A stretch of 58,243 nucleotides of DNA from contig LWCA01000079.1 of NCBI GenBank assembly GCA_001642005.1, forward strand, positions 1 through 58,243, in the 5' to 3' direction. Every line of letters begins with the position of its first letter. Position 1 is the stretch's first letter. A model generated the notes under the pieces. It searched no databases. It worked only from the letters and a program-made list of their open reading frames with translations, and was not told where the DNA came from. Below, in pieces: positions 10,890 to 58,243 of the stretch. The position numbers and the translations under genes were made by a program. Source of the DNA: Intoshia linei (Eukaryota; Animalia; Orthonectida).

Positions 10890-16374
<5,485 letters not shown>

Positions 16375-35189: not shown

Positions 35190-36420
35190 GAAAGTATTAT
35201 ACATTCTATACAACATATATTATGAAGTCCTGATTATTCGAAAATTTGAAAAAATGAAAAAATATCAAATATAAAAGGAATATGGGGTTTCCCAACTTTT
35301 GAATATTACTGTAATGAAAGTGTTAGATTTGTGGATTACAAGTTCAATTTCTATTAAAGATAAAAAAAATATTGTAAATATGTTAAAGACATACGGCGGA
35401 CGCTATAATTTATAAAAAAAGAAAAAAATTGGAGATGTAAGTCTTAAATATTACGTGAAGATAATTTTTTTAAATTATGAATCATAAAAGATGTTGCTAA
35501 TTTTTTAGTATGATAATTAGTATTATAATGAGTAACAGGTAAGATTTCTGGGTCTTTAAGTTCAGACATTATTTGATTTTCTTCATATGTATTATTTTTT
35601 TCAATAGTTATTGTATACATTGTGTTTTGAAGCAAGAAAACATTGTGTACTACCTTTGTGTTCATCAAACAAACGAATTAGTTCTTTCTTTGTAGATGCA
35701 GTTAAATATTTTTTTTTTAAATTTTCTTTGTTCATGTTGCAGAAATAACAAATTTTTGAATAGCACTTTTTGTAAACAATAATTGTGAATAACAATAAGA
35801 GCTTCACTTTAATTTGGATAAATTATGTTCATCGTTCACGTAGTAGAATGTTCACGATTCATTTACTTTTTTCATAATAAATTATAAAAAAATTTTTTTG
35901 TTGTTTATTATTGGAGAAGTTCACGTTATAGAAGGTTCATCTTATAGAAGGTTGACTGTATTCAGTTTTATAAAAAAGATTTTTGTCTGCAATTTGACGG
36001 GAAAAGGGCTCATGATTATGTTAATACTATTGTTAAATTTTTAGCGGTGTGTATATAACATCTGATGGATTTTCTAAAATTATAACTCGTCGGGGTCTGA
36101 TCAATTCGAAAAATGAAACAATATTAGTTTTTTGCATACTATTATACATTTACGAAATATTAAAAATATTTAATTTTTTCTTAGGCACACCTACAAACTA
36201 TAGTAATTATTTAAACACAATAGTTTTTGCCAAACTAAACGTTTCCGTAATCAATGTTATCTTAAATATGGTCAAACTAAGATAAGCCCTCGTATATGCT
36301 ACTCATACATAGTTATGTATACAAATTGTATACTAAAATTCAGTATCCTTGAGCATCCTCGTAGAGTTTTCAAATTTTGTTAAAATTTTGTATTTTAAGT
36401 TAACTTAACAAAACGAAACT
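35190..36420 (+). mobile_element. Old degraded hATm copy interrupted by a pogo/Tigger-like fragment (about 35444-35958, minus strand)
   Basis: FCLQFDGK and TSDGFSKII fragments and a subterminal region homologous to 49738-51915. Insert has TA|CAGTCAACCTTCTATAAG terminus and an HTH-like ORF. Confidence 0.6.
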
Positions 36421-36621: not shown

Positions 36622-39600
36622 TTAAAAAATTAAAAACATGAAAATAATTTGAATTTGCATAAAAACTTTCATCCAAAATGCATTAGATATTATATCATAA
36701 TTGCAGATATCCTGGTCACAACATGAGATACATGATTCTTTATTAGAAATATTGACACAAAATTTCTTTTTAAAGTTCAAAGTGTTGCAGACATTAAAAT
36801 CACAGTATCTTTTGTATTTTAAAACATTTGTGTTCATATCATTTAGCCTTTCAATCTATTAAATTAAAATTTGTAATAGAATATAATCATTAATCAGTAA
36901 TTCCTCTGATGCTTACTTGGGATATATGGTAAAAAGTAGGCCCACAATTTTATTTTAAGTTATAATTATATAATACATTGTAAATATTACATAGCAATCT
37001 CCTGAACACACATTTAATGTCATATTCGCTGTATCTTTGGTGCAATTCATTATAGAAGGATGACATTGATAGCACCGCTTTTTTCCACATGTATAATTAT
37101 TGTTTCCCAAAAAATAACCCTTGTTACAGGTTGTACAACGTGGCTTATAATCAGCACAAGAATTACAACCTGTTTGACAATCTAAAAAGTTAATATAGAT
37201 GATTCATATGATATAATTTTATTTATTTTTATTTATAATACATGTATATTAATATATAGATAAATGTATTATAAAATTTACAATAATTCAAATAAAAATG
37301 TATAAAATATTTTTATCTATTAAGATAAACCTAAACATTGACTAGAATCATAAGTCAAAATTTTGGGTGATTCACATTTATCACAATAAACTTTGTTATC
37401 ATACCCCAGATAACATTTCAAACAATCCGTAATTTTGTCGGTGCATTCTAAAAGTTAAAATTATAATTATAAATTGATTTGATATTGATTATTAATGAAA
37501 CTTTGTTAAGTGCAATCAATTAAAGGTTGATTTTATTAAAAAAAACGGAAACTTGATTTTTGACGCTGAAATAATCAATTTCTGAAAATGAAATTTTCAA
37601 TAAAACATGACTCTCGAAAAACTGTATTAGAGTTGGGTTATATTAAATTCTAGAACTGTTAATTTTTTAAATAATCGGCAACAAAGTAATTTAAAGACAT
37701 TTTATATATGTTAAAATATACTGTTGAAAATGGATAATTTCGTTAAATATTTGGCTAAATTAATACTTTAATGCTGGGGTTCTTAAACGATTTGGTCTAT
37801 CGTCCCTTTTTTAACAATACATTTTTTTACGCAACTTAAAAAAAATTTTCGACTAGTTCGTATAGTATAATATACTATATTTAAAAATTTACTCAATAAT
37901 ATTCAAATTTTTTTATGATTCAACTGATCATAAGATATTTCCGGAACCTGGAACCTGGAATCGATATTAAATTATTAATGATATAATAAATGGCCATGAA
38001 AATTAATTATTTATTACTGTGACACTATTTATCTCAGTGGATCGTAAACTTGCTACAAAAATCTCTCCTTACAACCAAAAAATTTATCAAAGCCCCACTT
38101 TATATTATATATGTATGTAATATATCATTTTTTTAAATAGCCTTAATCGCCCCTAATTGAATTAATTTCCCACTTTGAGAACCCCTACTGTAATATATAA
38201 AATTTAACTTACTTGTACAAATATGTGGTATAACGATAGTGTCTTTATAAGCGTCATCACTACATATTTTGCAAGTATTACTGTTGAAGCATTCTTTGCA
38301 ATTATGACCGCATGCTATAAATTAGAATTAACGACAGTCTTAATTTATATAAAACTATTTTTTTGTATGTCTGTCTGTCTGAGTGTTTGTTATCGTTTAT
38401 GTTTATTTTCAATAACAAAGACTTTTAGAATATTAACAAACATAAATTCCAAGTCAGATTTTTACGGTTGGCAAAAGTAAGATAAATTTCAATATAAAAA
38501 ACTACATCTTCCCGGTCAAAAACTCCAATTTTCCTTTTTTTGAAAAATTAAACGAGGTCTAAAACTTAAAAAAATAAACACTCCAATAACGATTATTTAT
38601 TATTATTTTAAAATCATGTACATTATTATACATTTAAATTTCAAAAAGGTATATCTTCAGTGCGAAAACCCAAATTAACCAGTTTTTAAAAAATCAGAAT
38701 AGTCATAGAATACCAAAAATTTACAATTCATACAAACAGACACAACAAAATAATGACATACATGAAACCAGTACAGAACCTAATTTACCTAGAGTATTGT
38801 GGGTCGACGAATTTTTCTTAAGTAGGTGCCTTATTTTTGAAAATTGAGCATTTAAAAAAATATATTTTACAATGTTATAACTGTTATGTATAGGGCCGTG
38901 AATATTTAGCTAGTGTTATATGGCCTTACATTTACATCCCTTTGTGACACTATTATATAAATATCCACTTGAACAAGTTTGACATCCGGTTTCCAAATTA
39001 CATAGAATGCAATTGTTTGGGCATTCTATATAAAATACAATATAAAATTAGTTGTGCTTTTATAATAATGTATTATGTATGAGGTCGATATCAATACAAT
39101 ATATTTCTACATATCTTAATTCACGTATGCAAAAAAATACAACAATTATAATATAATGGGAATCCACAATATGAATAATAATTGATAATTATACACTTCA
39201 AATTAGGGGAAATAAATGTATAGTTAGTATAAGAAAAAATTTACGTAGACAAATTTGATGTTTATTGTCATATAAAAACTTATCAGAACAGGATATACAT
39301 GTTTTTGCATCGACACATGTTGTACAATTGTTGATACATGCTAAAAAATTGTAGTACATTTAATATATTTACATTATAATAAATATGGCGATTAATAGAA
39401 TAGACTTACATTTACATTCCAACAATATTGAATCAAAAAACATGTTCTTTTCCATACATCTTAGACAGCTTTTATTATCTGTGCATTTACTACAACCAGT
39501 TATACAAACTAAAGTTTAATAAATTTTTAAATGATTTTTTAGTGTAGTATATCCATTTTAATGTACAGTTCATATGGTAGCTCAGAAAAAGCAAACCATG

Positions 39601-42600
39601 CCTAAGTTGTAAAAAAATGAAAGAAAGTTTATCAGTATTTAAAAATTTAAATCACATTTGTATTACATTACACAAAATTAATTAATGAAAAAGGGAATCA
39701 TACATCATGGATGATTTTCATATTGGACTAAACAATTATTATTATTTTATGTTGAAAATACGTGGGACCAACTTTAAAGTGTAAAAATTTTTTAAAAGTC
39801 GCTGTTGTAACCTAAACCTAACCAAACTATAAACCTTATTTGAAGATCATTGGGATAAAAATGACATTCAAGTTATCATGAACAATTTGTTAAACGTGGT
39901 TCACTTTTTCTGGTGCTACAATATTATTAAAGTGGATAGACAAAAATGTAATTAAAAATAAAACAATTTAAATAAATGTTAAACATCTAATGTTAATCTA
40001 AACCTTCACATTTATTTGTGGTAATATCAAAAAAGAATCCATTGGCACATTCGATGCATTTAGTTGCTTCAGCACACACAATGCAGTTAGTCATGCATTC
40101 TATATGATAAAAGTTTTATGAAAAAATTAAAAATTAATCATTAGTTAGTTTTTAATATACGAATGTAGAGTGTACAATATACACTGTACTACAGTGTACA
40201 TTACGTATCTATATCAGTATTTTCCAACCATTTTTTCACCGTGATCCATTTTTCATATATAAAAAAACTTTAATTTTGATCTTTTAGTTTAATTAGAAGT
40301 GACAGAGCCGAACCTACCCGCTTGAGCCCATCAAAAATAAAAAATAGTCTCATAAAATTTTTTCTAAAATGTTATATCATAATAAATAACCCTGACAACC
40401 TTTCCACAGGCATAAATTTGACTGGATACTGGATACTGTAAATTTTTTTAAATTGGATGAATCTGTATTTCAAATATTTTAAGCAGAATTTAATTTAAAA
40501 AATGTAATATTTAAAAAAAAAAAAATAGTAAATTGCTTTTATTGACAGTCAAGAATTTTGCTTATTTGTGACATTGAAATTTTTCAAGTACAAGTATGTT
40601 AATTTAACTTAATTAACTGAAAAAAATGTAATATTTTTTAAAATTGTAGGACCATTAATTTTTTTCATTTTAAAAAATAATGGTTAATTTGTGGATTTGG
40701 TCCAAAAGATTTAAGTTTTTAAAGTTGAAATTTATGCGCACGATTTTAAAATTTGTATAAAAATTTATGATTTTTGAAATTAAGTACTGATTTGATTTCA
40801 AAAAAACGGGTCCTTTCGGTTTTTAACCATAAATAATCAATTTCTGAAAATTAAATTTGCGATAGAACCTCAATCTCAAAAAAATGTATTAGAAATTGGT
40901 GTTTTTAAAATCTAATGTTTCATATTTTCTTATATACTTGGTTACAAACGTATATAAAGATATACATTTTTAGCGTTTAAAAAAAATTCTTTTTTTAATT
41001 TTTACTAATAAATTACTTGAATAAAGTAATCATTTCTTAGTAAGGAGTGACATATGATATATATAAAAATTAAATTTTTGCTTATTTATGCATATATATA
41101 TTTATTATTATTATATATTGATTATTACTTGTACATGTAGTCTGATCGAAACTTACTTCTAAAAAGTAATTGACAGCACACAAATCGCATTTATTAACTA
41201 ATGTACAAGCCAAGCAATTTTCTGAACATGCTAAATACATAAAATGAACATAAATGAATATAATTTATAAATAATATAAAACGGTACTAAACGAGAAACC
41301 GTAAATATTCAATTATATATATTCTATTATATTATATTTATTTTTTTAAGACAGTGTTATAGTGAATTGTCATATGAACAGAGTATTATGTTAATCACCT
41401 TATGACTAAACATCTTACTTTTTTGATTTTCATTTTACATTTATACACTAAATTTAAGAAATTCTAAGACGGGTAGTTATTTAAATAAAGCATAACACAC
41501 ATTAAAACAAAAATCGCGTAGCATATTATATAAGTTAAAATTATGAAATATTAGAAGGTTTTCATTGATTAGGAACGGCTATTATATAGGATAATTAACG
41601 ATAATTGTACATATGCAATATATTTGTAAAATTTACCTTTACATGTATCCAATTCGTATCCTAGACTACATGTGATACACACAGACATATCATTGAACCC
41701 TTTTTTACATCTTTGACAATTGTTGCTACTCACTACATGTATAACTTCAAATAATATCAGACATTCCAATTTCAAAGTAATACACACTTAATCTTCCTGA
41801 ATAAATTTCATATGATGTAACTCAAGTGAAATTCAATTAATGTGAAGAATTGAGTTAACGGATATAAATCTTATGATTATCATAGTTTTATTTTGATATA
41901 CCAAACGTGAAAAGTCAAAATTTACGCATAGTTAAAGATAAATTAAAACTGTAAGGGGGTTTTCCATTAATTTTTGTTGGAGTCTTTTCAAAAAAGGTTT
42001 TTTTAGTATTAGATAAAAATATTGTATATTTCGTTGGGTCTAGTGACAAGTTGTGACTTGTCACAACAAAGTTTCACTGATTTTCAGGTTAAAATGGATC
42101 GATCTAATTATAGTTGGTATAATTTGAATATTTACACAAAATTCAGATAAATAAGCTTTTAAATTTTTACGTAATTGGCATATTTTATTTATAAAGTATG
42201 TATAATATAGTAATTATTAATTACATATACAAGTGTTTGAATCCAACAAACAAAAATTTGCCATACAAATTAAACATTTTCCTTCGTTAAAGCAAGTTTT
42301 ACAATTATCAGAGCATTCTAAAAAGATTAGTTACATACATTAAGATAAAATTTATCAAATTAAGATGTATTAAGTCAACCAATTACGGTGTAATACTTTT
42401 ATCTTTTAAAAATTGTTTTTAAATTTTTTCAAATTTAACACCATTAATCGTTATTACATCAGACATTACTTACTTTGACATTTTTTCATTATAGAAGAGT
42501 AAAAATATCCATCAACACAAATTTTACATGGTGTTGTAGTGTTACATTCTTGACAATTTTCAATACAATCTAGAAAAATCGTTACGTGTTGATACAAAAC

Positions 42601-45600
42601 ACAAATGTATTAAAATTATAATAAGTTAAAAAATCACTTTTTATCTGAATTTTAGATATAAAAGTACATTGCTGTTTATTTTGTTTTATCCTTTACTTAT
42701 ATGAATATCCTGAAAATTACAAATTATCCTTTTTTTTGAAATGAAAAAAGTACTAGAAATTAAAAAAAAATACAACTCATACAGTTATACATATCCAGTT
42801 AACACACCCAAAAATTTTTAATCTCATTAAATCACGCCTTCAGGTTCAATAAAGTACTTTAGTATTATTTTTTTTTAGTTTATACAATTTATTTAAAAAA
42901 AAATTTGAAATAATTAATTGATACATCTTATTCCAGTTGATCTAGATCAGGGGTTTGAAAAAGTGGGCGATATTCAGCTGGGGGCAATTATAAAAACATG
43001 GTATACCAAAAAAACGATTTTAGATAGATAGAATGGAGCGTTAATAAATTTTTTGGTTGTAAAAAGGATATTTTTATAGCAAGTTTGGGATCCACTGATA
43101 TAAAAAGTGACAGTAATAAATATTTTTTTTTTTAATTTCTAAATATTGAATAATGTGTAAATTATTAAATATATATACGACGTAGTCGAAAAATTTTTCA
43201 GGGGGGCGTTGAGAAAATATATGCTAAAAAGGGGGGCGGTAGGCAAAATGAGTTTGAGAATTCCTGATCTAGATTCTAGAATTTAGACACATTTCAAACA
43301 TAAAAATCTATGCATTCCGGTGAACAATAAATTTTAACATATTATCAACCAATATTTTTCAAATTGTTGAATTAAAATTAAAAAGGAAAATTTGAACCTA
43401 TAATTTAAAAAAAACTGGGAATTGATCGTATACATATTTTAAATACAGAATTGTGGGTTGCAATCTCTTAAATTGCTTCTTTCTGTTTTTTTATCATTAC
43501 TACGAAATTTTTCATGTTTAAAAAATTTCAAAATTTACAATCAACTTAACTTTACTTTGTTAGTATAATTTGGAAATTTATTTTAATTTTGATAAAATTG
43601 CTTCATATGAAATGCATGACAGAAGAAAATAGTGTAATAATAAAGCTCCGGTATCCAGGGACACTGTTAATTTTATTATCAACCACCTGAAGAATATCAC
43701 AATTGTAATACTAATTAAATTATTTAATTGAATATCGACTTTAATCATCTCGATCTCTTCGATCCATTACATAATAAAGTCATTTTGCGCGTAAAAGATT
43801 TTTTTCAATTTAGGATAAAATAAACGAATTTCGCAAAATCAATGATAATTACTGTGAAATTATCGAAAAGCAATGTGAATGCTTAATTGACACGAGTGCT
43901 AGGAAAAGCTTGATTTCGGCATCGAAGGCGGGTCCAGTTACGGATCGAATTCCGGAAAAAGGAATTTACGGGTGCAGTTGGAGAAAAATATATTTTTCTG
44001 CACGTGATGTTGGTAATTTTATCGTATAACCTCGTTGATTTGGAGGTTAAGGCACATGTTATCGAAAATTGAACCTTTGAGAGGTTCGATATAATTTTAG
44101 GGTGTGATTTCCTATTAAATTATGGCGTTGTTTTGGATATAACTTCGAATACGATAAAGTTCCAGTTGAAATGGAAGGAAATTGATCATTCCGGACCTAA
44201 AGTGAATACTGTGACCGGTAAATCTTCTGATCTAGAAGAAATGGTCGAAAAGTTGGTGGATTTGGGCGCTGTGGCGCCGGATATGAAATACATCGTTGAA
44301 AAATTTCCCGATGTATTTGATTCAAGGCCAAAACAAACAAAGGAGGTCGAACATGAGATTTACGTGATTCCCGGTAAGTAACTCAACCGAGGCCTGGTAT
44401 ATGGGGCACCTGGTAACTTGAGAAATAAGTTACGTGAAAATGTTGAGGAAATGTTAAAATTGGGGATAATTGAGACATCCCGTAGTAATTGGCGAGCTTT
44501 TTGTATGTTAGTGCATAAGAAGGGCGGTAAGGATAGATTCATCGTAGATTTCAGGGGTTTAAATGAAAGAACTGAAAAGGATTCGTATCCCACCCCAAAT
44601 CCGAATGAGATGTTTGATCAGTTGAAGGAAGGTTGGGTATTTACCACGATTGATTTGAGTAAGGGAGGAATAGAGTGATTTGAGGAAAGCAAGTTCCTCT
44701 AAGACCAAGTGACCGTAAATACACGGCATTTGCCACTAGTTTGTTGGGCATAAGTAACAAATTATTTCAATTTAAGGTACTTCCCTTTGGTCTTAGCAAA
44801 TTTCCCTCAACATGTCAAAGGTTAAGTGATCGAATTTTGGGTGGAATAGATTGTGCCGTCGCGTATATGGACGATATAATAGTATTTTCTAAATCGCGAA
44901 AGGACCACAAACGCGATTTAGAAGGGGTTTTGACTTGTTTAAGGAATGCGGCGATCGATCTTGGAGGGAGATATAATAATAAAGCTCCGGTATCCAGGAA
45001 CAATGTTCACTTTATTATCAACCACCTGAAGAATATCACAATTGTAATATTAATTAAATTATTTAATTGAATATCGACTTCAATCAGCTCGATCCTTCGG
45101 TCCATTACAAATAGCATGTCCAAATTTTTTCTTATTTTTAGGTTTGTAACTATAATTGAATTTCTGTTAAGATTATAATCTTATTATCTATAATCAATTA
45201 AAAAATCGGCTTTCGGCAGAGATAGGTGTTGTTTGTACGAAGTACATTATAGTCAAGCTATTAATAAATAAACCTTCGCATTCTTTCTTCTCTACATCAT
45301 AATACATATTAGTGTTGCATTTTTGACAATAATGGCTCGATGGGCACGATAAACAATTATTAATGCATTCTAAAATATCGATAATATATACAATACAAAA
45401 TATTAATACAGTGTAGTATGGACTAATTATAGATTACAGTAGTTCCGAAATTTTGAAACTGATAAAATTTAATAAAAATAAATTTCGTTAACCCTGTGAG
45501 AAAAGTTGTAACATTGTAAATTTAAAATTTGACGTAAATGTCGGTAGTATATAACAAAATATATCTTATGAAAAATATTTCGCAGATTTTTAGGAAATTG

Positions 45601-48600
45601 ACAATTTCCCATTTGAACAAGGTGTATAAATAAAATAAAAAATTACCATTACAATATTTACCGACAATTTCGAAATATCTTCCTACACCGCAATCGGTAC
45701 AGCTATCCAAATTACTGCAATTTGTACAATATAGAGGACATTCTAAAAATTTCATATAATTTATTTTGGAATGTAATGTTTTGTAGAGTATGAAAAATTA
45801 CTATCGCATTCATTTGATATTGGGTTGAAATAATGAGCCTGTTGACATTTTATGCATTTATTAGAATCAATACATTTGTTACATCTCGTTGGACAATCTG
45901 GTAATATTTAATCAAAATTATAATTATAGTTACCGACACACTGTGATATGTTGTTCCAAAATTTATTTTTCAAGTATTTATTGACATACATGCCACAATT
46001 TGAACATTTCAGTTCAGTGTCCAACGTCATACCATCATAGCAGTCTTAAATAATTACTTTAAAATGTAATTTAAAGTTAAATATATAAATATACTAATAA
46101 TATCATTATAAACACTATTGTTATTAATTTTATAAATATAGAATATATATTGAATTATAATTATCAATTTACCAAAACATTGATTTTCATAATAATATAA
46201 AGCTTTTTTTTCTGTTGAACATTGTTTGCAATTTTCACTATTTAATACAGAGCAATCTGAAATGCATAAGAAATTGTAAATAGTAATAATATATGTTACA
46301 ATTAATTAATATAGTGAATTAATAGAAACGCACCTACACACATTTTGTACAATTCTGACCATGATTTTCCTGGAAAGCATTGATCGCACACATCTTTTAT
46401 TGAGCATCTAATGCAATTTAATGGACAGTTAATGCATTTCACATCCCAAATTCTACCTGGACACGTTTCACACAATATTTTAGTTTCCAAGAATGAGCCG
46501 ATGCAGACTAATTGGTTAATATAGTAATGACAGTATATTAAAGGATCTAAAATTGGTCATCTTTTTGGACTACAATATTCCATGAAACCTTCAGTAACTT
46601 TACTTTTAAAAATTAATAGCTTCACCAAAATGTGTCATTTCATATTGATACAAATTTAATAATAAATCTATTCTAATTACAAATTATAATAATTCTAGAG
46701 TAATAGTTCTTTAACGCGATCCGAAATTTACGTTGTGGTTAAATTTACTAACAGCTAATATTACATTATTGATAGGTGTAAACTCTTAAAATTCGTGCTT
46801 TGGACCGTGTTACAGAACTAGTATCTACGGTGTGTATTAGTTTTTTGTTTTATGTAGTTTTAAATTTTTCATGTTACTTATGAGTTTATTTATAAATAAG
46901 ATGTAAATAATATGTGATCTATAAGGATGAGCGATTGTTCATGTTGTCGGAATAAAACTGTTTTAACACTCTCGCATTCAGACATTTTTGTTTTAAATTT
47001 ATTATTTATGATGCTCACAATTTCCACAGTGACCTGAAAAAATATGTAAGAAAATTTATATTTTTGTAAAAAGTAAGTATGTTTGTTTAAATTTCGTAAT
47101 TGCGTCAATTTAAATGTGAGAGTGTTAAAAGTAACCAATTTTTATTATGAATAAATAAATTAAAATTTTACTTTGACATTTCCACGTTAATTCATTAAAA
47201 AAGTATCCATTGTTACACCGGATGCACCCATCGGCATTGCAGGATTTGCAGTGAGTTGGGCACACTAAAATATAAAATTTTTACATAATAACTGCAGTAC
47301 AATATTAATTGTTTCACAATCACAATATTTATTTTTAATTAGCTCGTAATTTATAAATTTATGTTGTCTAATTTAATCAATGTAACGCGCAAATTAAATA
47401 CTTTAACAATCAATTTAGATTAAATAATTTTGTCAGTTTGTTTATATTTATTTATGAAAGTAAGAGGTGCCGAGTTTTAAAAATTTCATATTTATATTAT
47501 ATTTTTTCGAGAGTCTTGTTTTATCGCAAATTATAGTTTCAGAATTTGATGTATTCAAAGTAAAATCCCAATTCTGCTTTTTTTTAAATTCAAATCCGTC
47601 CTAGAATTATAAAAAATATACAATCTGATCAAAATTTTAAAATTATCAACATAATAATTATTTTTAATATCAAAATTTGATATCTTCATGGCCAATACCC
47701 CAAATTACATTTTTCTAGTAAAAATGAAAAGTCCTAGAATTTTATGCAACATAAATTCTGGGATAGTTTTTAAAATCATAAGCATCATCATCAATGGCAA
47801 CCATTAAAAAAATTACATATGATACAGTTATATGCAGTTAATACACTTTTTTTTCATTTTTTTTTATTTCGAAACTATTTTATTAAAACAAAAAATTTGA
47901 AATAATTAATGGTCTCAAAATTTAAAAAAAAGTTTATTCTGATACAGCTGATTCTAGTTAATATAAATACAAAATTTTAACCTGAAAAAATATACGAATT
48001 CCCGCTGAAAAATAATTTTTAATATATTATCAACCAAATATATTTCAAATGTTGGATTAAAATTAAAAATAAAAAAATATATAATTATCCTACAATTTTA
48101 AAAAAAAAATGTGCATTAAACGTCTAAACATCTCCAATAAAGAAATGTGGGTGAAAATTTATATAATTGATTCTGTCGGAATTGCTACGCAATATTTCAT
48201 TTTCAATACTCGATTTCAAATACAAAATGTAATTCAAATAATCACTTTGTACTAAATTTTAATCTAAAACTACAAGCAAGTACTACAAAGTACATATTTT
48301 TTATCATTTTTATATTTATTGCAAGGTTGGTAAAATTTACCCGAAATATGTTTTTAAAGTGGTAATTCAGTTAATTATTGATACAAAATTGATATTTTTT
48401 ACTCATCTAATCAGGTCCACTGGACTCCATTGTTGGTATCCATGGAACCTTATATAAGAAAAATAGTAATTGAACATTAACCCTTTGACTGTTTATTGAA
48501 TTCTAGACTATACACAGCATAATTTTGAAAAACTTTATTATTTTATTTTCATACATTTTCACATAAATAATTTAAGAATTATACAAGTTTAAATTAAAAC

Positions 48601-51600
48601 ATAAATTCAAGACAGTGAAAGGGTTAACAAGCAAAATATAAAAATAAGTTACTCCAACATTGAGCCACGTTGGTAACAAAACTATGTCTGATATTGTTTG
48701 TTTGACAAGCATAGCATCGTTCAATGGTATTTAAAGGAGAATATGAACAAATCAGCGCTAAAAATATTATATAAAATTCAATGGATATAATTTCAAATTC
48801 TGTATGGATGCCAATTTCCAAAAACATTAACATTTAAAGCTTAAAAAAACGAATCAAAAAAAATCTTTTTAATATGACACCAAAAAAATTAATTTTATTC
48901 AAGTACGGATGTTAATAATATTATAGTTACATATATTTACATTTTTGTATTTTTTAAATTCCTTTTTTTTAACTAATAAAATAAATACTAAATAACTAAT
49001 ACTGCCATTAGAAAAATTATCTAATAAGGTAGTATAAGATTTGAGTATGCCATGTGACAGAGCCTAACCTACCAATCTTAAGGTCACTCGAAAATGAAAA
49101 ATTTGCATCTCAAAAAATTTCGCAATTGATGAGTAGTGTCATATATTCCTAGCCACCTCTCCAAGGATGTTGAATTGACATTTTAAATTTAATACACTAA
49201 ATAGTTTTCATATTCAGAATTCAATTTGAAAAAATGAGGGCCCAATTTTATTTTAGAGAGTTTCTCGTTACGATAGGTTCAGCACTTCCGTGTGGTACAT
49301 AATAAATTCACTTTTGCAAGTTGTGCCATTCCAGTAAACTCCTGAACAAGAATTGCATTTAGGTTCAGAATTCAAAATTTTTGGATCATTGCAAAGTAAT
49401 TTTACACATACATTGAAGGTAGAATCATAATAATATCCTTTTTTCATTGATTGGCATTTAAGACAACTATCTTTCAGTTTAATGCCAGTAAATGAAGCGG
49501 CCATCGTTTCGCAATTCAATGCTATATAATAACAATATATTGAATTTGATAATATTAATTTAGAAAAGTTTCGCAGTTGAAATTCAATAATATATACATA
49601 TATATACACATATTGATCTAGGGCATTGATGCCAACATTTTTCTGTTGGTGTGTCAAAAATTTTTTTGTTTTCTTTTTTAGTTGCGTTTCTCTTTTAAAT
49701 GATAAATAATGTTAGGTATGTACACTAGTATGTATAGTAGGGTGGACATATTTTTCATAATAAATAATTATTTTCAGATTTTCTGGAGGAACAAGTGAAA
49801 ATTTTGTTTGTTTCATTAATATATACATTTGTAGGAAATTTTACAAGTCTACCATAATGTTATAGTGGTGCTCAAGGGCGGGAAATATACTAAAAGTTGA
49901 GTTTTTTTGATTTTAATGAACTTTATGATTATAATAAAATGTTATCGTAATATAACAATCAATAATTATATTTTTATCATTCATACGTATCTGTATACCA
50001 AATTTTAGGAGTCAGGGTTGATGTTAAATAGTGTTTATTAAATGAAATAGTAAATTATTTTAATTTATTTACTTAACAAAATTAATCTACCATTTAATGT
50101 TACCAACAAGATCAAAATACAATATATGATTAATTGGGTATGTTATGAAAGATTTTACTTGCTATAATTTTCCGACCATAAGAGATGTATTGAAAAGTTA
50201 TTTTTATCATGTTAATAATAACAGTAAAACGTATTTGTTCTCTGAAGTTGTTAATTTAACTGTAATGAAGGTTATGGATTTGTGGAGTACTAGTACCATT
50301 CCGATTAAATATAAAAACCGTATTATAAATAAGTTAAAGACATATTGCCATACAACAATCTAAAATGAATGGTATTTAGTGATAACAATTGTGTGGATTC
50401 AATTCAAAATGATGTAAACTTGAATCAAGCACATCATGGTGGGCAGGTATCAAAACTGTATTGTCAGGATATTGAAAAGGCTTGTATAAAAACACACACT
50501 TCGTCACAGAAAATGCAAATCATTTTAAAAACTGTCATCAATTATGCAGTTCGTTCAAGAACAAGCTGTATTAATGCATTAAACGAAAAAATTGGACTGC
50601 AGTGATAAAATTAAAATAGACATTGATACATTCAAGAAAGATTTCTGTATTCAATTTGACGGAAAAAATGCTCGTGGTTATGATAATAATATTGTGGAGT
50701 TTTTATCAGTGTGTCTCACATCGGATGGATTTTCTAAGATGATTGCTCTTCGAACTCTGACTAATTCCAAAAGTGATACAATATTTACTGAATTACCAAA
50801 AGTAATTACAAAATACAATATTTTATTCATGATTAAACTCATCATATGTGATACCACTGCAACAAATACCGGACGCATCAATGGAGTTGTTGCACAAATG
50901 CAGAGACTAAACGGTAATATAGAATATGAAGGCTGTAGGTTTCATATCCTAGATTTGATTTTGAAGCATGTTTTAAATCAGATATTTGGATGTGGAACTG
51001 TATCTTCAAATATTTATTATTCTTTTGTTAACGCGATTCGCGATAATTATTCGTCCCTATACAGCAATTATATTGGGACAATTGATATTGAATATGAAAA
51101 TACTCTAAGTGGAGAAATGATTATAAGGAATTATATGATTTGGTGAACTGTTATAAAACACTTAGAAAATATACTTTCGATACAAAAATGAATTTCAAGA
51201 AACCATGCATAATATCGAATGCTAGATGGAATTCTAGAAGCATTTACTGCCTCAAAGCTTTCATTCTAAATTTGGATAGGACAGAAATTATGATCGAAGC
51301 GTGTAATTTTATATTATATGTATGGAGTAAATGTTAGTTTACATGTCGTGATCAAAAAATAGCTTTTGGGGAACCTCTTGAACTGTTATAGGACCTGTAA
51401 TATCACCTAAATACCCTAAAGCGTATTGTTGCCTAATGAAACATTGGAATAAAACTATACAGTTTATGGATATATTTTTCACCAATGAGATATGCGAAAG
51501 ATCTCTTGCATTGATGGATAACGTTGTCCCGACATGCAAAAACTTCAAAAATTTAGAAAATAGAGTTTTGACTAAATTTAATAATTATGTATAAAAAATT

Positions 51601-54600
51601 CACATTAAAATTATCACAATTTTATTTAAAATTCATTGTTAATTAATTAAAATTTAACGATTTAAATTTTATTCTACATTCAAAACTATTAATTGAACCT
51701 TATTTGGCTTTTCTAGAATTAATTTGATTATATAAGTAAGTAATACTCTTAATATTCATATTTAAATAATAATTTGATATTCTGTGCCCTTGAGCACCCT
51801 TATAAACTTTTTGAATTTTGTTAAGATTTTAGATTTTATGTCTGCTAATCAAAACGAAAAGTTTTGGATCTTGTCCTATCAGAAATTCATAAATATTGAA
51901 ATTATGTCCACCCTAATGTATAGTCTACATGATTAAAATAATAATTTAATGCTTGAAATTTTAGTTTTTATGAGTTTTGGCAATTTTATGAATTTAAGGT
52001 CAAATATAAGACAGAAATTCGCATTTATTCATCAACATACATGTATTTAATTCTGTCTTTTTTTTTATATTTTATTGTTATCAAGGGTGGAACTCCTACT
52101 TCACATAGATATCAAGTCGAAAATAACAATAATATTTATAACGCTTTGCTACATATATCAGGATATTCGTATTTCATTAAAATCCAAAAGTTTTCAATAG
52201 AAAACTCTTTAAAATCAATTCTTACACCATGATCAGTTGATATCATTGCTAATTCCTTTTCTTCTATTAAATGTAATAGTTTTTGTATCTACCGATGGAT
52301 TATGAATCCAATCATAATCTTCAATATTCAAGGATGGGAAATATTATCTTTTTTTTTAACTTTTGGATTAGTCACTAGGTGTTAGTGATTAGGTGGTCAC
52401 TAGTGACACGCGTGTCATATTTTTGCCATCCCTGGTTTAAAAGGTACAAAACGTGGTGTTAATGAAGTGTAAACCACAGTAGGGGTTGCGAGATTATCAA
52501 TATTTGTTTAATTCTGGATTTATTTATACATATTTAAACTTACACCAACAGACTGGAGTAATAAATTTTCCCGTCATGCAAGAGTTGCAATTGCTTTTAT
52601 CCAAATCCAAATCAACGCAATTTACTTGTGTTGTGTCTAAATAAAATATTAATAAATTTAAAATTTGTTTACAATTTGTTAAAAGTGTTATCTAAGCATT
52701 ATACATTGTATACTATACAATCATTAATATATTGGTGTTATTTTATCAGGGTTGATACCTATCCAAAATTCAGAGCAAAGGATAAAATGTGCAATATAAA
52801 ATGTAATAATTGCATTTTATAATATATATAATGTAGATTTACAATGTTAATGTAACACAATATAATTTTGAACCTAAACATTTTCCCGAATTCCAAATTT
52901 TACCAATTGTACCTTCACATTTAGCTTGTGAGTCCAATGTAGTTTTTAAGATGGCTAAAAGATAAATAAATAATTATATATATTTTTTTTTTATATTTGT
53001 ATTAACTATGTCTCTACAAGAAAATATCTCTCTTTGCCAAAAATTCTACACATTCATTTTTTTTCAGTGTTGCCTTAAAATTATCATACGCCACTTTATC
53101 CGTTCCTGCACCATAAAATTTTCAAAAAAACTACTAAAATTCACAACCTAACACATATGATATAAAATAACAGTAACATGGAAGTATTTTCACGTACACT
53201 GTACATGAAACTTAATAAGACACCAACTTCGAAAAAATATTAAAGTATACGTGTACTAATCCCGGCATCATCATATGCTATTCCTTTACAATATAAGTAA
53301 TCGTTTGAAGTGGCTTTAATTTTTAGACATTCGACAGCTATTAAAATTGAATAAATTAAAGTTTAATAATGTCTAATAATTAAACAGTACATTATTACAA
53401 TTACATTGTTTTGATTAGTAAACATTACCTTTTAAAACATTACTCACTAATTTTACACCATAACACGAATTGCATAATTTTTCATTATTATATACATTTT
53501 GATTATCACAAACAAAGGTTTCTAAAATGCAAATAATATTGAATAATGACTCCAATTTTTACCTACAACTCCAATATAGTTTCGTGTTTCGCATGCCGCT
53601 GCGGCAGCTACACTGGAAACTTTAGTACAATCAACCGTTTCTAATATATTTAGTATTATCAGTATAATTAATACATTTATGACAAAATACTCAAATTATT
53701 AAAAATTTAAAAATTACCACACTTTTTACCATCCCAAAAATTTCCCAACTTTCTACAACCAAAACACTTTACCGCGGTATTCAAAACATCCTTGTAACAA
53801 TCTATTTCTAATCAAAAAATTAACTTTGGATTTATTTACAAAATTAAATGTAATATTAAAAGTTCCGGGTAACGTCAAGGGGACAAGACTGAATCCTCCC
53901 GTAGGAGGATGATTACACGTCACTGACTATTACACGTGATAATATAAAATACTGCATACTATAGCATTGATTTAGATACCAATATTGATTATTACAAGCT
54001 TCACATTTCTCTTTTGTATTTAATTGACTAAAATTGTCGCAATCAATTGCTAGAGTAAATCAATAATAAATCATAAAATAATAATAACGTTAAAAATATT
54101 ACGCAAACAAAGTTCGTAATCCTTATTCCAATAGTGACCACAATGCTTGGTTTTGTCTTCAGTCCATGTATTGGCAGTACAGTCGACTAAAATTAATTTT
54201 AAAGAGTATAATGTTATAGAATCATGATATTATCTTATGAAATGTATTTACCTTTGTCACATCGATAACCCGTTGCAGACCAAAAACGATTTTCACATGA
54301 ATTGCATAATAAATTTTCGTGTATTGTCAGATGGTTTAAATCACAGAGTGATGCTAAAATATATATTAATTAACAGTAACTAATACTTTTCCGAAATTTT
54401 TTTATATTAGTATTTGTTATTGTGACTTGACGTAATGGGGACCTTAAAAACACTGAAACGTAATGTAATGATGGCTGTAAATCGTGTGAATTTGATTTTA
54501 AGCTAATAAGAAATTCTATGTAATCGAATTTCGCAACATTTGATACCAATAGAATAATTACCAATGGAATACGGTATTTCAGTACGAAACCTTTTTTATA

Positions 54601-57593
54601 TGATACTTTAGAAAAATCTGATTTTTTGGTTTTTATAGTAAAGGTATTTATCTAAAAATGCCTTTAATACCAGAATCATCAACGCCCAAGAATTGAGAAA
54701 AAGTATCTTTAGAAGTAGAATAATTTAAAGTTTTTAAAAATATAGATAAAAATGTGTAATAATTATGTGTAATAGTCTATTACACTATTACTCTATTACT
54801 TAAAAAGTACAAAGTAGAAAATTTTCAAAATAATAAGCAAGTTTATAAATTACTTTTGCATTCATTACTTTGAAAATATCTACCGTTGCATCGACCACAT
54901 TCATCAGCATTTAATTTACTCCCACAATCAATACCTATATATTAAAAATATAATTATAATTATTACTACTTCAAATAACACAATCCAACACTAAAAAACT
55001 GCAAGGGATGATGAATGCATCATCTTTTCGTCTCAATAAGCTGATCAACTTAATACCAATTTCATTTTTAAATCACGTCAACATTTTTGTTAAATTATAA
55101 ATTAAATTTTCAAATTATTGTACATTGCTGGTAAAATAAAAACAGATTTGTTTTGTGTGGTCATATTTTAAATAAAAATTATTTGTATGATAAAATTAAT
55201 TTTTTAAACTAAAGGGGTTATAAAATAAAAAAATTATACTTAGAATCTAGGCCAGTGATGCCAAAAATATGACACGCGTGTTATATTTGACACGCTGGTA
55301 AAAAGCTTATTTGAAAAATTAACTCAATAGTGTGTAATAATAGAAAAGTATACATAGCTATAATTATTTATCATTTAAAAGTGACACACCAACTGAAAAG
55401 TCTTGCCATCATTGATATAGGGCCTAAAATCTAGGCCATGGACATTTATTATTACCAACCATACTATAACTAATTATACTATGTGTTATACGTTTATTTG
55501 AATAACTACCAGTCTTAGAATTTTATAAAGTCCACATTTCCAATTACAGTTTTTTCCAGAGGTGTTAACAAAATAAATTTCAACCTTCCAAACTCACATC
55601 TTACGGGTCAAAAAGCCCAATTGTCCTTTTTGTTGAAAATCAACCAAGTTTGAGAATTTAAAAAAATATATACTCTGATACAGATTTTAAAATCATATAT
55701 ATTATCATAAATTTAAATTTAAAAAAAGTATATCTTCAGGGCCAAAACCACAAATTACCTTTTTTTATGAAGACAGCCCTAGAATTTAAAAAAATTTACA
55801 GATGGTACAGTTGTATCCTGTTAAGTCACACAAAAAATTTCAATCCGAATAAGTAGCGACTTCACGGTCAAAAAAAGCATTTTAATATTTATATATTTTT
55901 TTTCCGAAATATTTTATTAAAACAAAAAATGTGAAATAATTAACAGTCTGAAAATTAAAATAAAAAGATTATTCTGATAGAGCTTATTCCAGTTAATATA
56001 AATACAAAATTTCAACCCCTGAAATCTACGCATTCCCGGTGAAATTTAATTTTTAATATATCATCACGTTGATATATGATTACCATAGGTTACTAACCTT
56101 ATAATAATACTTAGTGATAGTTTCATCAGTATACATTATCTAGAGCAGGAGTGCACAACCTTACCACTAATTCAGCCACAATGCTAATTTTCTCATTGAT
56201 ACTACGGTCGCACAAAATTTACTTATAAATTGAGAAAGTTTACGCTGAAAATAAAGTTTAGGTCTAATAAAATAGTTATCTTTAAATTTTAATATCAGCA
56301 AGTTTTAATTAATAATTTTCAATTAAAATTAATCCTTAATTCACTCATATAAATTAATACCACATTTGTCATTTATCTGAATCGGAATAAATATCAATAT
56401 TAGGATTAATGCAGTGCTTCTTATGGGGTGACTGGTCACCCCATAAGGGGTAAATACAAAAATTTTAGATGATTGTAGGCAAATCTAAAATTTTCAGCAT
56501 ATTTCATTCAATCATCTAATTTAGTAAAATCTTATAAGAAAAAACCAAAATTTTACCAAATCTTGAGGAAAAAAATCTCCCTTAACCAATATTTTTAAGA
56601 AAAATCCATTTTTACCAAACTTTTAGAACAAAAACTACTTTATATGATCCCAAAAGAAAAAACCCAATTTTAACAACCCTTAATGAAAAAAAACCGCTTT
56701 TACCAATTTTTTTCTGAAAAATCCCATTTTACCAAATTTTTAGATCAATAATTTCTCTATCTGATTCCAAAAGAAAAAATCTAATTTTAAAAAAATTTGA
56801 AAAATCCCCTTTTACCAATATTTATTTGAAAAAACATTAATCATTAATGTTTCGGTAAATAATTAATAATAATTAGACAACAGAAAAAAGTTCCAGTAAA
56901 AACCGATTTGATGATACTTTAGAGTGGAAGACATCAAAAAAATTAAAAATAATCATGTCAATATTAATAATTACATAAAAAAAAGATAGCAGTGACTGTC
57001 TTGATTTTGTGTGCCCTTCACTATCATATTAAAATCATTATTTAAATAACATTTGACAACTGGGGCAAATTCAAGAATGTAACTTTTTGATTAAAATATT
57101 TTAAATAGCCCTTGAATAAAATCTGATTTCAACTTTTCAATTTGAAGTAAAATGATATATTCCATTATTATCAGTTGAATTGGCTACCGCTGCACATCAA
57201 CGCTCTCACAGCAGCACGTTGTGCACCCCTGATCTAGTGTCTAAACATTTATTGTATAACTATCATCAAAAGAATTATGTTGGAATAATTTAAAATGTAT
57301 ATTATTATTATATGAATGAATTACGTTTGCATGAATTTGAACCATAAAATCCAATAATTTTATAAACGTTTCTATCAATACATCTTTCGCATTTTGATAA
57401 ACTATCAATTACAGTTGTTTCAGTGCATTCTAAGTTAATATCAGTTGAATTGTTAAACGGTTCTGTAGTAAATAAGCCAACTCTAATATATTTCACTTAC
57501 GATAACACTTGTCTGTAAAATAGAATCCACTACATTTTTCGCAACTTGACTTTGTTATAAGTAAACTTGATTTTTGATTCAACGTTTTGCAAT
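36622..57593 (-). CDS. Large cysteine-rich (CxxC/furin-like repeat) surface protein with C-terminal Ly6/uPAR-like domain and GPI-type tail; at least 33 exons, about 1180 aa in window, 5' end not found
   Basis: 31 phase-1/1 exons: 57501-57593, 57325-57429, 54854-54934, 54252-54353, 54103-54186, 53960-54049, 53718-53801, 53563-53640, 53429-53521, 53251-53337, 52874-52954, 52544-52636, 49312-49521, 48653-48757, 47172-47264, 46334-46507, 46173-46256, 45934-46044, 45802-45897, 45647-45742, 45274-45369, 42474-42569, 42225-42317, 41637-41732, 41129-41230, 40004-40099, 39410-39508, 39245-39340, 38930-39025, 38213-38314, 37331-37447. Then 36991-37181 and 36622-36855. All open in frame with GT-AG. Confidence 0.85.
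37773..38190. mobile_element. hAT MITE, inverted relative of 42948-43266
   Basis: GGGGTTCTTAAAC ... CCCACTTTGAGAACCCCT termini; internal similarity to the 42948 copy. Confidence 0.6.
42948..43266. mobile_element. hAT MITE nested in a Helitron
   Basis: CAGGGGTTTGAAAA...TTTGAGAATTCCTG; perfect 8-bp TSD ATCTAGAT. Confidence 0.85.
43633..45109 (+). mobile_element. Internally deleted Ty3/Gypsy LTR retrotransposon
   Basis: LTRs 43633-43771 and 44972-45109 (TG..CA); PPT TTGGAGGGAGA; 5-bp TSD AATAG; protease-like LIDTSA; RT motifs RFIVDFRGLN, TIDLSKG, LPFGL, YMDDII. No gag, RNase H or integrase seen. Confidence 0.93.
48481..48623. mobile_element. piggyBac-type MITE (143 bp)
   Basis: TTAA|CCCTTTGACTGT ... 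ACAGTGAAAGGG|TTAA. Confidence 0.85.
49738..51915 (+). mobile_element. hATm-type DNA transposon with both ends and a disrupted transposase
   Basis: TIR TAGGGTGGACATA/TATGTCCACCCTA; perfect 8-bp TSD ATGTATAG; fragments QFDGK, CDTTATNTG..NG, CRFHILDL, NARW, NEICER. Confidence 0.9.
55253..55414. mobile_element. hAT1-like MITE
   Basis: CAGTGATGCCAAAAATATGACACGCGTG ... CTTGCCATCATTG; related end at about 52400-52434. Confidence 0.7.
55470..56060 (+). mobile_element. Helitron-like repeat, long 5'/core fragment
   Basis: About 590 bp collinear with the reverse complement of 13340-13910. Confidence 0.8.
56146..57231. mobile_element. Non-autonomous hAT element containing a 31-bp-unit tandem array (about 56520-56830)
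   Basis: CAGGAGTGCACAAC...GTTGTGCACCCCTG; TSD ATCTAGAG/ATCTAGTG. Confidence 0.8.
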
Positions 57594-57762: not shown

Positions 57763-57926
57763 TAACTTATATAATATGCTACGCGATTTTTGTTTGTGTG
57801 TGTCTGTGTGTTCTGCTTTATTTAAATAACTACCCGTGTTAGAATTTTATAAAGTGTACATTTTAATTACAGTTTTTTCCGGGGGTTTTCGCAAACTTAA
57901 TTTCAACCTCTCAAACTCAGATCTTA
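57763..57926 (+). mobile_element. Helitron-like 5' fragment interrupted by mariner
   Basis: TAACTTATATAATATGCTACGCG start; breaks at ATCT|TA. Confidence 0.75.
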
Positions 57927-58243
57927 TTAGGTCGTTTCATAAGTAATGTCGTTTTTTTAACAAAATTAAAAAGTTTATTTGATTACATTAAAAATAAAGT
58001 TATATTATAAAATATTCAACATTGCTTTCCAGTCTTTTTCCAACGTTCCGGTAGTCTATTTATACTATTAGCATAAAAAATCGCTACTTTATTGGACAAA
58101 AACTTTTCTATGTCCAATTTTAACCCTTCATTTGAAATGTATTTTTTATCATAGTAATGGTTACTCATAGCAATGGTTACTCATAGCAATAAATAGGTAA
58201 TAATCAGATGGTGCTAAGTCTGGTGAATACGGTGGATGTGGTA
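57927..58243 (-). mobile_element. Mariner transposon, 3' end (degenerate)
   Basis: TA|TTAGGTCGTTTCATAAGTAATGTCG TIR; minus translation PHPPYSPDLAPSDYYLF...RLPERW; a short tandem duplication disrupts the frame. Confidence 0.9.

Follow-up and report, generated by a model that had tools for sequence, protein, structure and literature searches.

A predicted fixed-order rod of furin-like modules, with a likely Ly6/uPAR domain and a probable GPI anchor, encoded by a colinear gene family of the orthonectid Intoshia linei

Furin-like (FU) repeats, known from the R-spondins, the convertases PC5 and PACE4, and the insulin and EGF receptors, share a characteristic cysteine spacing (C-x3-C-x2-C-x5-C-x2-C, followed by an aromatic residue and a last cysteine) and, in R-spondin, form a ladder of beta-hairpins; in PC5/PACE4, the FU arrays come after the catalytic and P domains. 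CxxC-rich extracellular repeats also make up the variant-specific surface proteins (VSPs; PF03302) of the parasite Giardia, a multigene family of ~200 intronless members that end in a transmembrane helix and a CRGKA tail, and the immobilisation antigens of ciliates are glycosylphosphatidylinositol (GPI)-anchored proteins with periodic cysteines. Proteins with Ly6/uPAR (LU) domains, such as LYPD6/6B, GPIHBP1, uPAR, and Quiver, finish with a CCxxxxCN motif followed by small residues and a hydrophobic tail, and are either small (one to three LU domains) or equipped with short acidic or other N-terminal parts. Finally, the micro-exon genes (MEGs) of Schistosoma contain runs of symmetric exons of 6–36 bp, which encode no folded module and can be skipped without loss of frame; the resulting variation has been demonstrated with transcripts. 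Here we compare with these systems a gene of the orthonectid Intoshia linei that occupies much of the minus strand of contig LWCA01000079.1. Orthonectids are extremely reduced parasites whose molecular host interface is almost uncharacterised, and the genome of I. linei, represented by a 41.6-Mb assembly of 3,520 contigs, is one of the smallest among animals. The window analysed is this contig in its entirety (58,243 b, GC content ~26%; label C1634), and other C-numbers below are labels of contigs within the same assembly.

We consider it likely that the window gene encodes a fixed-order rod of FU modules that ends in a Ly6/uPAR domain and is probably GPI-anchored, and that it is one gene of a colinear family. 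The segment from 57593 to 36622 would represent the 3′ four-fifths of the gene, and its product would be a long extracellular rod of ~14 four-cysteine and ~17 six-cysteine FU modules, succeeded by the Ly6/uPAR domain and a hydrophobic signal. Judging from complete paralogs, a signal peptide and ~8 FU modules are missing at the 5′ end and are expected on another contig, and the full protein would form a rigid, disulfide-laced ladder of ~40 FU-type hairpin modules, of which ~31 are encoded in the window. Once the signal was cleaved and a GPI anchor added, the Ly6/uPAR domain would lie close to the membrane and the rod would extend outwards from the cell. FU repeats, Ly6/uPAR domains, and GPI anchors are each known, and the architecture joining them in an expanded family appears to be new, no description of it having been found in the limited set of literature searched.

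Exons were located by translating the minus strand, scanning for AG...GT pairs that keep the enclosed segments open, and mapping public gene models back to the DNA. Two such models, OAF71117.1 (A3Q56_01152) and OAF71115.1 (A3Q56_01150), both annotated as hypothetical proteins, map onto the window at near-identity. A preliminary description of the window, made from the letters and their open reading frames (ORFs), had listed 31 consecutive minus-strand exons entered and left in phase 1, with lengths divisible by 3. We recovered this run almost to the nucleotide, from 57593 to 37331; the layout described earlier is incomplete in that two further exons, neither of them of the 1-1 type, end the gene. 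Acceptors are AG throughout and in most cases preceded by a T-rich tract; donors are GT throughout, with GTAA in 24 out of 32. Most exon junctions are identical in the independently built public models. The 33-exon model contains no stop among 1169 in-frame codons, for which the chance expectation at the base composition of the window is ~2e-45, bearing out the earlier remark that the exons are free of stops. The introns have a median length of 228 bp (36–3022 bp), whereas most introns of the paralogs measure 34–60 bp; the heavy transposon load previously ascribed to them was also found, in the form of a reverse-transcriptase (RVT_1) fragment and several dispersed repeats. The exons are as follows (lengths in nucleotides, nt; 1-1, entered and left in phase 1; OAF68963.1 is a paralog described below):

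57501..57593, minus strand: exon 1, 93 nt, 1-1, four-cysteine module, matches module 9 of OAF68963.1
57325..57462, minus strand: exon 2, 138 nt (105 nt with acceptor 57429), four-cysteine module with KCERC
54854..54934, minus strand: exon 3, 81 nt, 1-1, four-cysteine module
54252..54353, minus strand: exon 4, 102 nt, 1-1, four-cysteine module
54103..54186, minus strand: exon 5, 84 nt, 1-1, three-cysteine HCGHY module, conserved in paralogs
53960..54049, minus strand: exon 6, 90 nt, 1-1, IDCDN..LNT..KC module, omitted by the public model
53718..53807, minus strand: exon 7, 90 nt, 1-1, CFGCRKLG marker module, once per paralog
53563..53640, minus strand: exon 8, 78 nt, 1-1, irregular two-cysteine module
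53429..53521, minus strand: exon 9, 93 nt, 1-1, three-cysteine module
53251..53337, minus strand: exon 10, 87 nt, 1-1, two-cysteine module
52874..52954, minus strand: exon 11, 81 nt, 1-1, two-cysteine module
52544..52636, minus strand: exon 12, 93 nt, 1-1, four-cysteine module
49312..49521, minus strand: exon 13, 210 nt, 1-1, two four-cysteine modules, omitted by the public model
48653..48757, minus strand: exon 14, 105 nt, 1-1, four-cysteine module
47172..47264, minus strand: exon 15, 93 nt, 1-1, six-cysteine FU module
46334..46507, minus strand: exon 16, 174 nt, 1-1, one four-cysteine and one six-cysteine module
46173..46256, minus strand: exon 17, 84 nt, 1-1, four-cysteine module
45934..46044, minus strand: exon 18, 111 nt, 1-1, four-cysteine module with KFW
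45802..45897, minus strand: exon 19, 96 nt, 1-1, six-cysteine FU module (second example peptide of the preliminary description)
45647..45742, minus strand: exon 20, 96 nt, 1-1, six-cysteine FU module, final exon of OAF71117.1
45274..45369, minus strand: exon 21, 96 nt, 1-1, six-cysteine FU module (first example peptide of the same description), outside OAF71117.1 and OAF71115.1
42474..42569, minus strand: exon 22, 96 nt, 1-1, six-cysteine FU module, outside both models
42225..42317, minus strand: exon 23, 93 nt, 1-1, seven-cysteine FU module, outside both models
41637..41744, minus strand: exon 24, 108 nt (96 nt with acceptor 41732), 1-1, five-cysteine module, contains the start Met of OAF71115.1
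41129..41230, minus strand: exon 25, 102 nt, 1-1, six-cysteine FU module
40004..40099, minus strand: exon 26, 96 nt, 1-1, six-cysteine FU module
39410..39508, minus strand: exon 27, 99 nt, 1-1, six-cysteine FU module
39245..39340, minus strand: exon 28, 96 nt, 1-1, six-cysteine FU module
38930..39025, minus strand: exon 29, 96 nt, 1-1 (public model: donor 38936, 90 nt), six-cysteine FU module
38213..38314, minus strand: exon 30, 102 nt, 1-1, six-cysteine FU module
37331..37447, minus strand: exon 31, 117 nt, 1-1, six-cysteine CxDKIxxC module, same position in paralogs
36991..37181, minus strand: exon 32, 191 nt, phase 1 to 0, last FU module and first half of the Ly6/uPAR domain
36622..36855, minus strand: exon 33, phase 0 to stop, second half of the Ly6/uPAR domain (CCDQDICN), ISNA, 14-residue hydrophobic tail

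The modules fall into two classes: shortened four-cysteine modules with one CxxC in exons 1–14, and canonical six-cysteine FU modules with two CxxC in exons 15–31. This division corrects the earlier account, in which most exons carried one CxxC module. Sixteen aligned six-cysteine modules (alignment A1) are ~32% identical, with the cysteines alone invariant, in line with the strong divergence around conserved cysteines reported at the outset; positions C1, C5, C8, C14, C17, and C30 are invariant or nearly so, and G-[YF] comes after the fifth cysteine. The A1 profile matches 13 R-spondin-1/2 chains (Fu1-Fu2) among solved structures, with E-values of 3.7e-5 to 6e-3. Consistently, the AlphaFold model of OAF71115.1 (432 residues), in which the predicted local distance difference test (pLDDT) is 75–90 across the repeats, has a fold in common with the R-spondin ladder: comparison with Fu1-Fu2 gives VIA Z scores of 6.0–4.4, with ranks 1–18 all occupied by R-spondin. 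With Foldseek, the same 432-residue model reached no significant E-value, and the usable Z values come from VIA alone. Pfam searches with single exons, OAF71115.1, and OAF71117.1 returned nothing above the cut-offs. Judged by cysteine spacing and predicted fold, the window modules are FU repeats. They differ from known FU proteins in their setting: where R-spondin has two repeats, the Intoshia protein would have ~40 in series, without a thrombospondin-type (TSR), kinase, or protease domain, but with a mid-block of shortened four-cysteine modules and a Ly6/uPAR plus GPI-type end.

The best non-self matches of the profile, among 1.84 billion representative proteins, are long cysteine-repeat proteins of Tetrahymena, Paramecium, and Tritrichomonas. 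For the ciliate proteins, which are of the immobilisation-antigen type, the match is generic and repeat-to-repeat, with neither colinearity nor an LU domain and in a different kingdom, pointing to a shared repeat type rather than to orthology. The comparison with Giardia VSPs, from which the window protein had initially been called VSP-like, stands in so far as CxxC/furin-like modules of this kind occur in VSPs and in ciliate surface proteins, and a multigene family in a parasite is common to both. It fails at the level of the VSP family itself: PF03302 scored 16.6 bits for exon 22 and 30.0 bits for a fragment on C2741, against a cut-off of 31.4 bits, and gave no match for OAF71115.1 or OAF71117.1. 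Moreover, unlike the VSPs, the Intoshia family has ~10–13 genes, a fixed module order, and a GPI-type end without a charged tail.

At its C-terminus, the window protein changes character. The region spanning exons 32 and 33 reads CYQC...C...C...C, then ...C...C...C...CISCCDQDICN, with 11 cysteines including a CCxxxxCN motif. As the last FU module and the beginning of this region share exon 32, the junction between them is independent of the splicing model. A structure search of the ESM Atlas with residues 284–378 of OAF71115.1 returned seven rows with TM scores of 0.65–0.71, all of them three-finger clusters (Ly6/uPAR, Quiver, GPIHBP1, or TGF-beta-receptor ectodomain), and residues 303–372 of the AlphaFold model gave middling VIA Z scores of 3.7–3.0 against GPIHBP1, Lypd6b, uPAR, TEX101, and TbRII. 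Whole OAF71115.1 had no Pfam UPAR_LY6 match, the sequence similarity of the Intoshia domain to known Ly6/uPAR proteins lying below the Pfam cut-off. We regard a Ly6/uPAR three-finger domain as the likely, albeit not proven, identity of this region. The reading frame continues through VFMQIQIIFMFLIF to a stop at 36622, giving the layout ...CNYDIISNAFWMK-VFMQIQIIFMFLIF-stop, that is, small residues and a short hydrophobic stretch with no cytoplasmic tail. The same order, CCxxxxCN, small residues, and hydrophobic tail, is seen in LYPD6/6B, GPIHBP1, uPAR, and Quiver; in the Intoshia protein, however, the LU domain would stand at the foot of a rod of ~1300 residues. It is most likely, from this layout, that the hydrophobic signal is exchanged for a GPI anchor. 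The secreted cysteine-module protein with a GPI-type C-terminus that had been proposed for the locus is supported by the likely three-finger domain and the hydrophobic tail, the anchor itself being a prediction.

A search of the genome with the module profile located FU modules on 17 other contigs. Three loci have long public models, namely OAF68963.1 (1456 residues, C2611), OAF71400.1 (1278 residues, C2509), and OAF69529.1 (1196 residues, partial, C1651). Mapped to DNA, they follow one plan: a signal peptide, ~8 six-cysteine FU modules, ~14 four-cysteine modules, ~17 six-cysteine modules, and a Ly6/uPAR-type cysteine run at the end. The CCxxxxCN motif and subsequent hydrophobic stretch are kept in OAF68963.1 and OAF69529.1, and the OAF71400.1 model stops before them; the C-terminal layout of the window protein recurs in OAF69529.1 and in the C1055 paralog. 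In the three mapped paralogs, an exon mostly carries one module, with phase-1 introns at every junction that could be resolved (~40%). When the terminal exon was used by itself as the query, the genome search missed the Ly6/uPAR ends that the paralogs do have and returned no paralog, a failure of sensitivity.

The paralogs, at ~30–35% identity, retain recognisable modules in the same positions (KCERC, HCGHY, IDCDN..LNT, CFGCRKLG, KFW, CxDKIxxC, and the exon that fuses FU and Ly6/uPAR). Single-exon best-hit mapping was too noisy for OAF71400.1 (Spearman 0.23); colinearity was therefore assessed as the best colinear chain of local alignments between unjoined exons and a paralog, relative to 200 shuffled exon orders. 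The window exons are colinear with all three paralogs (z = 12.4 for OAF69529.1, 9.4 for OAF68963.1, and 5.6 for OAF71400.1). Since each module has kept its position from the time the paralogs diverged, the modules are not interchangeable, contrary to how the exons were characterised in the preliminary description. A profile of the CFGCRRLG module occurs in exactly one copy on each of ten contigs, and the first-module profile finds at least 11 loci. From these counts, the family comprises at least ten colinear paralogs, about 10–13 genes, and the possibility raised earlier that the gene is single-copy is thereby false. One complete paralog, C1055 (8204–13766), runs from signal peptide to Ly6/uPAR and hydrophobic tail in two ORFs of 840 and 585 codons, so a separate exon for each module is dispensable in this family. 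This intron-poor copy could be a retrocopy or the product of massive intron loss. At C1426:36900–38233 lies a decayed copy, nearest to OAF69529.1 (55–62% identity), with in-frame stops and lost framework cysteines.

Among the 150 best profile matches, two proteins from Logan assemblies, P0026 (1451 residues) and P0040 (406 residues), share the full architecture of signal peptide, FU repeats, LU domain with CCxxxxCN, and GPI-type tail, including the C-terminal layout of the window protein; the architecture is thus not private to Intoshia. P0026 is nearly equal in length to OAF68963.1 and 30% identical to it over 623 residues. Module by module, its colinearity with the window gene was not significant (z 1.8). 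It is found on 7-kb Logan contigs (SRR28002504, SRR28002475) that are probably mRNA, being intron-free and provided with a 2.6-kb low-GC 3′ region. Fragments of P0026 at ≥90% identity are also present in JGI metagenomes. A word-based homolog search, started from OAF71115.1 and from the C-terminal parts of OAF68963.1 (220 residues) and P0026, did not turn up any named relative, blanks in this kind of search meaning little.

The 5′ end of the window gene is missing. The acceptor site of exon 1 implies one or more further exons upstream, and because exon 1 corresponds to module 9 of the paralogs, the missing part should be a signal peptide and eight FU modules, not a protease. A fragment of this composition, with a signal-peptide-like stretch and modules 1–8, occupies the plus strand of C2741 (41263–44749) and is truncated where the contig stops, at 45401; part of it carries the annotation OAF70299.1 ("partial"), and its introns are long and repeat-bearing like those of the window gene. 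No overlap was found between the last 2.5 kb of C2741 and the last 1.2 kb of the window. Other orphan 5′ fragments are the C2065 tail and C1670, and we would give C2741, one candidate among at least three, somewhat less than an even chance of being the true partner, which makes the assignment a guess. OAF69529.1 is cut by the end of its contig at the same boundary as the window gene, before module 9 (C1651:34877–35336); several members may have a long, repeat-rich intron at this point, following module 8.

Other explanations of the exons were weighed. The preliminary description had considered an ordinary PCSK5/6-like convertase, with the array as its cysteine-rich C-terminal region and the subtilisin domain beyond the contig end, and the missing 5′ end and the position of FU arrays in PC5/PACE4 would fit this. 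We hold it to be very unlikely. Peptidase_S8 is encoded at four loci in the genome (C2812, C3070, C65, C2278), all well inside their contigs and with no FU modules nearby; complete paralogs pass directly from the signal peptide to FU modules, and exon 1 matches module 9 of such proteins; no subtilisin or P domain was detected in the window; and the combination of a Ly6/uPAR domain and a GPI-type end is foreign to convertases. A split of the exons among two or three genes, as annotated in GenBank (A3Q56_01152, 01151, 01150), has the existence of distinct public models in its favour, as well as the 2.7-kb intron with the reverse-transcriptase fragment, which separates two blocks of exons and coincides with the split between models. 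Yet the ends of both models are artefactual. OAF71117.1 starts in exon 3, read out of frame, and proceeds by intron read-through (54388–54910), and OAF71115.1 starts at an internal Met within exon 24 and so truncates the module encoded there. The terminal exon given to OAF71115.1 (35604–35765) is taken as an annotation artefact because it falls within a dispersed repeat of at least 20 copies and has pLDDT <45 in the AlphaFold model. Five exons are absent from both OAF71117.1 and OAF71115.1 (54049–53960, 49521–49312, 45369–45274, 42569–42474, 42317–42225), the comparison having covered these two models, between which A3Q56_01151 sits; three of the five (45369–42225) are good 1-1 exons that lie between the models and obey the same frame logic. 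Between 57593 and 37331, all exon boundaries fall within codons, so that no exon can begin or end a coding sequence, and the entire run has its colinear counterpart in single full-length paralogs. A division into separate genes therefore seems improbable, and a single gene, which would yield a single transcript, is the simplest reading of the exon structure. An unexpressed or decaying copy, that is, a young pseudogene bloated by transposons, is suggested by introns much longer than those of the paralogs and laden with transposon fragments, and by the clear decay of one family member on C1426. With an open frame that is so far from chance, GT-AG ends in 32 out of 32 introns, and an intact cysteine framework that matches the paralogs, we think this improbable as well.

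More far-reaching is the proposal, made in the preliminary description, that the symmetric exons are skipped, duplicated, or shuffled, giving a repertoire of variable antigens or recognition molecules from one gene. Any subset of the 31 module exons could indeed be removed in frame, most contain an even number of cysteines, and the gene belongs to an expanded family of a parasite and likely encodes a surface protein. In the runs of symmetric exons whose skipping would keep the frame, it also resembles the Schistosoma MEGs. But symmetric exons permit in-frame skipping and do not show it, and the phase 1-1 arrangement of module exons is a general rule for metazoan extracellular modules (PMC7259759, a passage of which cites the 1999 review by Patthy for the same rule). 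The layout is rather an inheritance from the tandem exon duplications that built the ancestral array. In contrast to MEG exons, those of the window gene are 78–210 bp long, encode a disulfide-bonded module each, are conserved in order, and are known here from genomic DNA alone. The conserved order relative to three paralogs, together with a marker module that is single-copy in each gene, indicates that modules have been neither shuffled nor duplicated since the paralogs split, and the low identity among modules within the gene speaks against recent exon duplication or conversion. In addition, C1055 encodes the entire array in two exons, and exons with odd numbers of cysteines are unlikely to be removable singly. 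Overall, the combinatorial inference is unsupported, and we consider it improbable. A narrower variant, in which the expanded family of GPI-anchored rods forms the main surface coat or host interface and most members use their per-module exons for regulated skipping, so that rod length or epitopes differ from one life stage to another, appears unlikely to a lesser degree.

By default, we take splicing to be constitutive and the rod, with its modules in fixed order, to serve either as a surface coat or as a means of displaying or spacing a domain of the Ly6 type; several observations have to be set against this reading. The two public sequencing runs that hold the window DNA (0.30 and 0.24 of sampled words) are neither of them listed as RNA. 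Four exons have odd cysteine counts (3, 3, 7, and 5), which means that some exons do not encode a self-contained disulfide unit. The Ly6/uPAR region is modelled with moderate confidence (pLDDT 39–72), and UPAR_LY6_2 scores 13.7 bits for exon 33 alone, below the threshold of 31.5 bits. The GPI-type signal was assessed by inspection, not by a predictor; a further N-terminal domain is conceivable beyond the contig end that cuts off the 5′ part; and the long, transposon-laden introns, unusual for the family, could signal relaxed constraint. All these points weigh against our interpretation to some extent. If it is correct, the protein may act as a parasite surface coat, a spacer, or an adhesion or recognition molecule, and the diverged paralogs, at least ten in number, may present different surfaces on one scaffold. 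So many long, probably GPI-anchored rods would be conspicuous in a genome of this size. The family has been hidden in GenBank as fragmented "hypothetical proteins", of which at least two gene models are corrected here, and it provides candidates for proteins that coat the surface or mediate adhesion in the plasmodium or the ciliated adult. More generally, a run of symmetric phase-1 exons is not by itself a diversity generator, and comparison of module order between paralogs is a cheap test.

The remaining features of the window that adjoin or interrupt the rod gene are mainly repeats:

57925..58243, strand not assigned: dispersed repeat, at least 40 copies, many at contig ends, truncates the 5′ part of the gene
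44418..45070, plus strand: reverse-transcriptase fragment (RVT_1, E 1.4e-11), antisense to the gene, in the 2.7-kb intron between exons 21 and 22
35460..35962, strand not assigned: dispersed repeat, at least 20 copies, 3′ of the stop, holds the false last exon of OAF71115.1

Beyond exon 1, the last 650 b of the contig consist of transposon remains only, comprising the at least 40-copy repeat and, at the extreme contig end, a mariner-like transposase C-terminal motif (PHPPYSPDLAPSDYYLF). At 57925–58243, 55607–55982, 47562–47947, and 13413–13796, the window contains members of two dispersed repeat families, both short (~320 and ~380 bp) and present in dozens of copies at 82–98% identity; they seem to be the cause of assembly breaks, since many copies are located at contig ends. 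A cluster of plus-strand ORFs (72, 78, 184, and 65 codons) at 50145–51600, inside a 3-kb intron and antisense to the gene, is probably another transposon remnant; the two of these ORFs that were searched against Pfam had no match. Downstream, at 29728–31002 on the minus strand, a 425-codon ORF encodes a PP2C phosphatase domain (PF00481, E 1.1e-34) and seems to be a neighbour unrelated to the rod gene.

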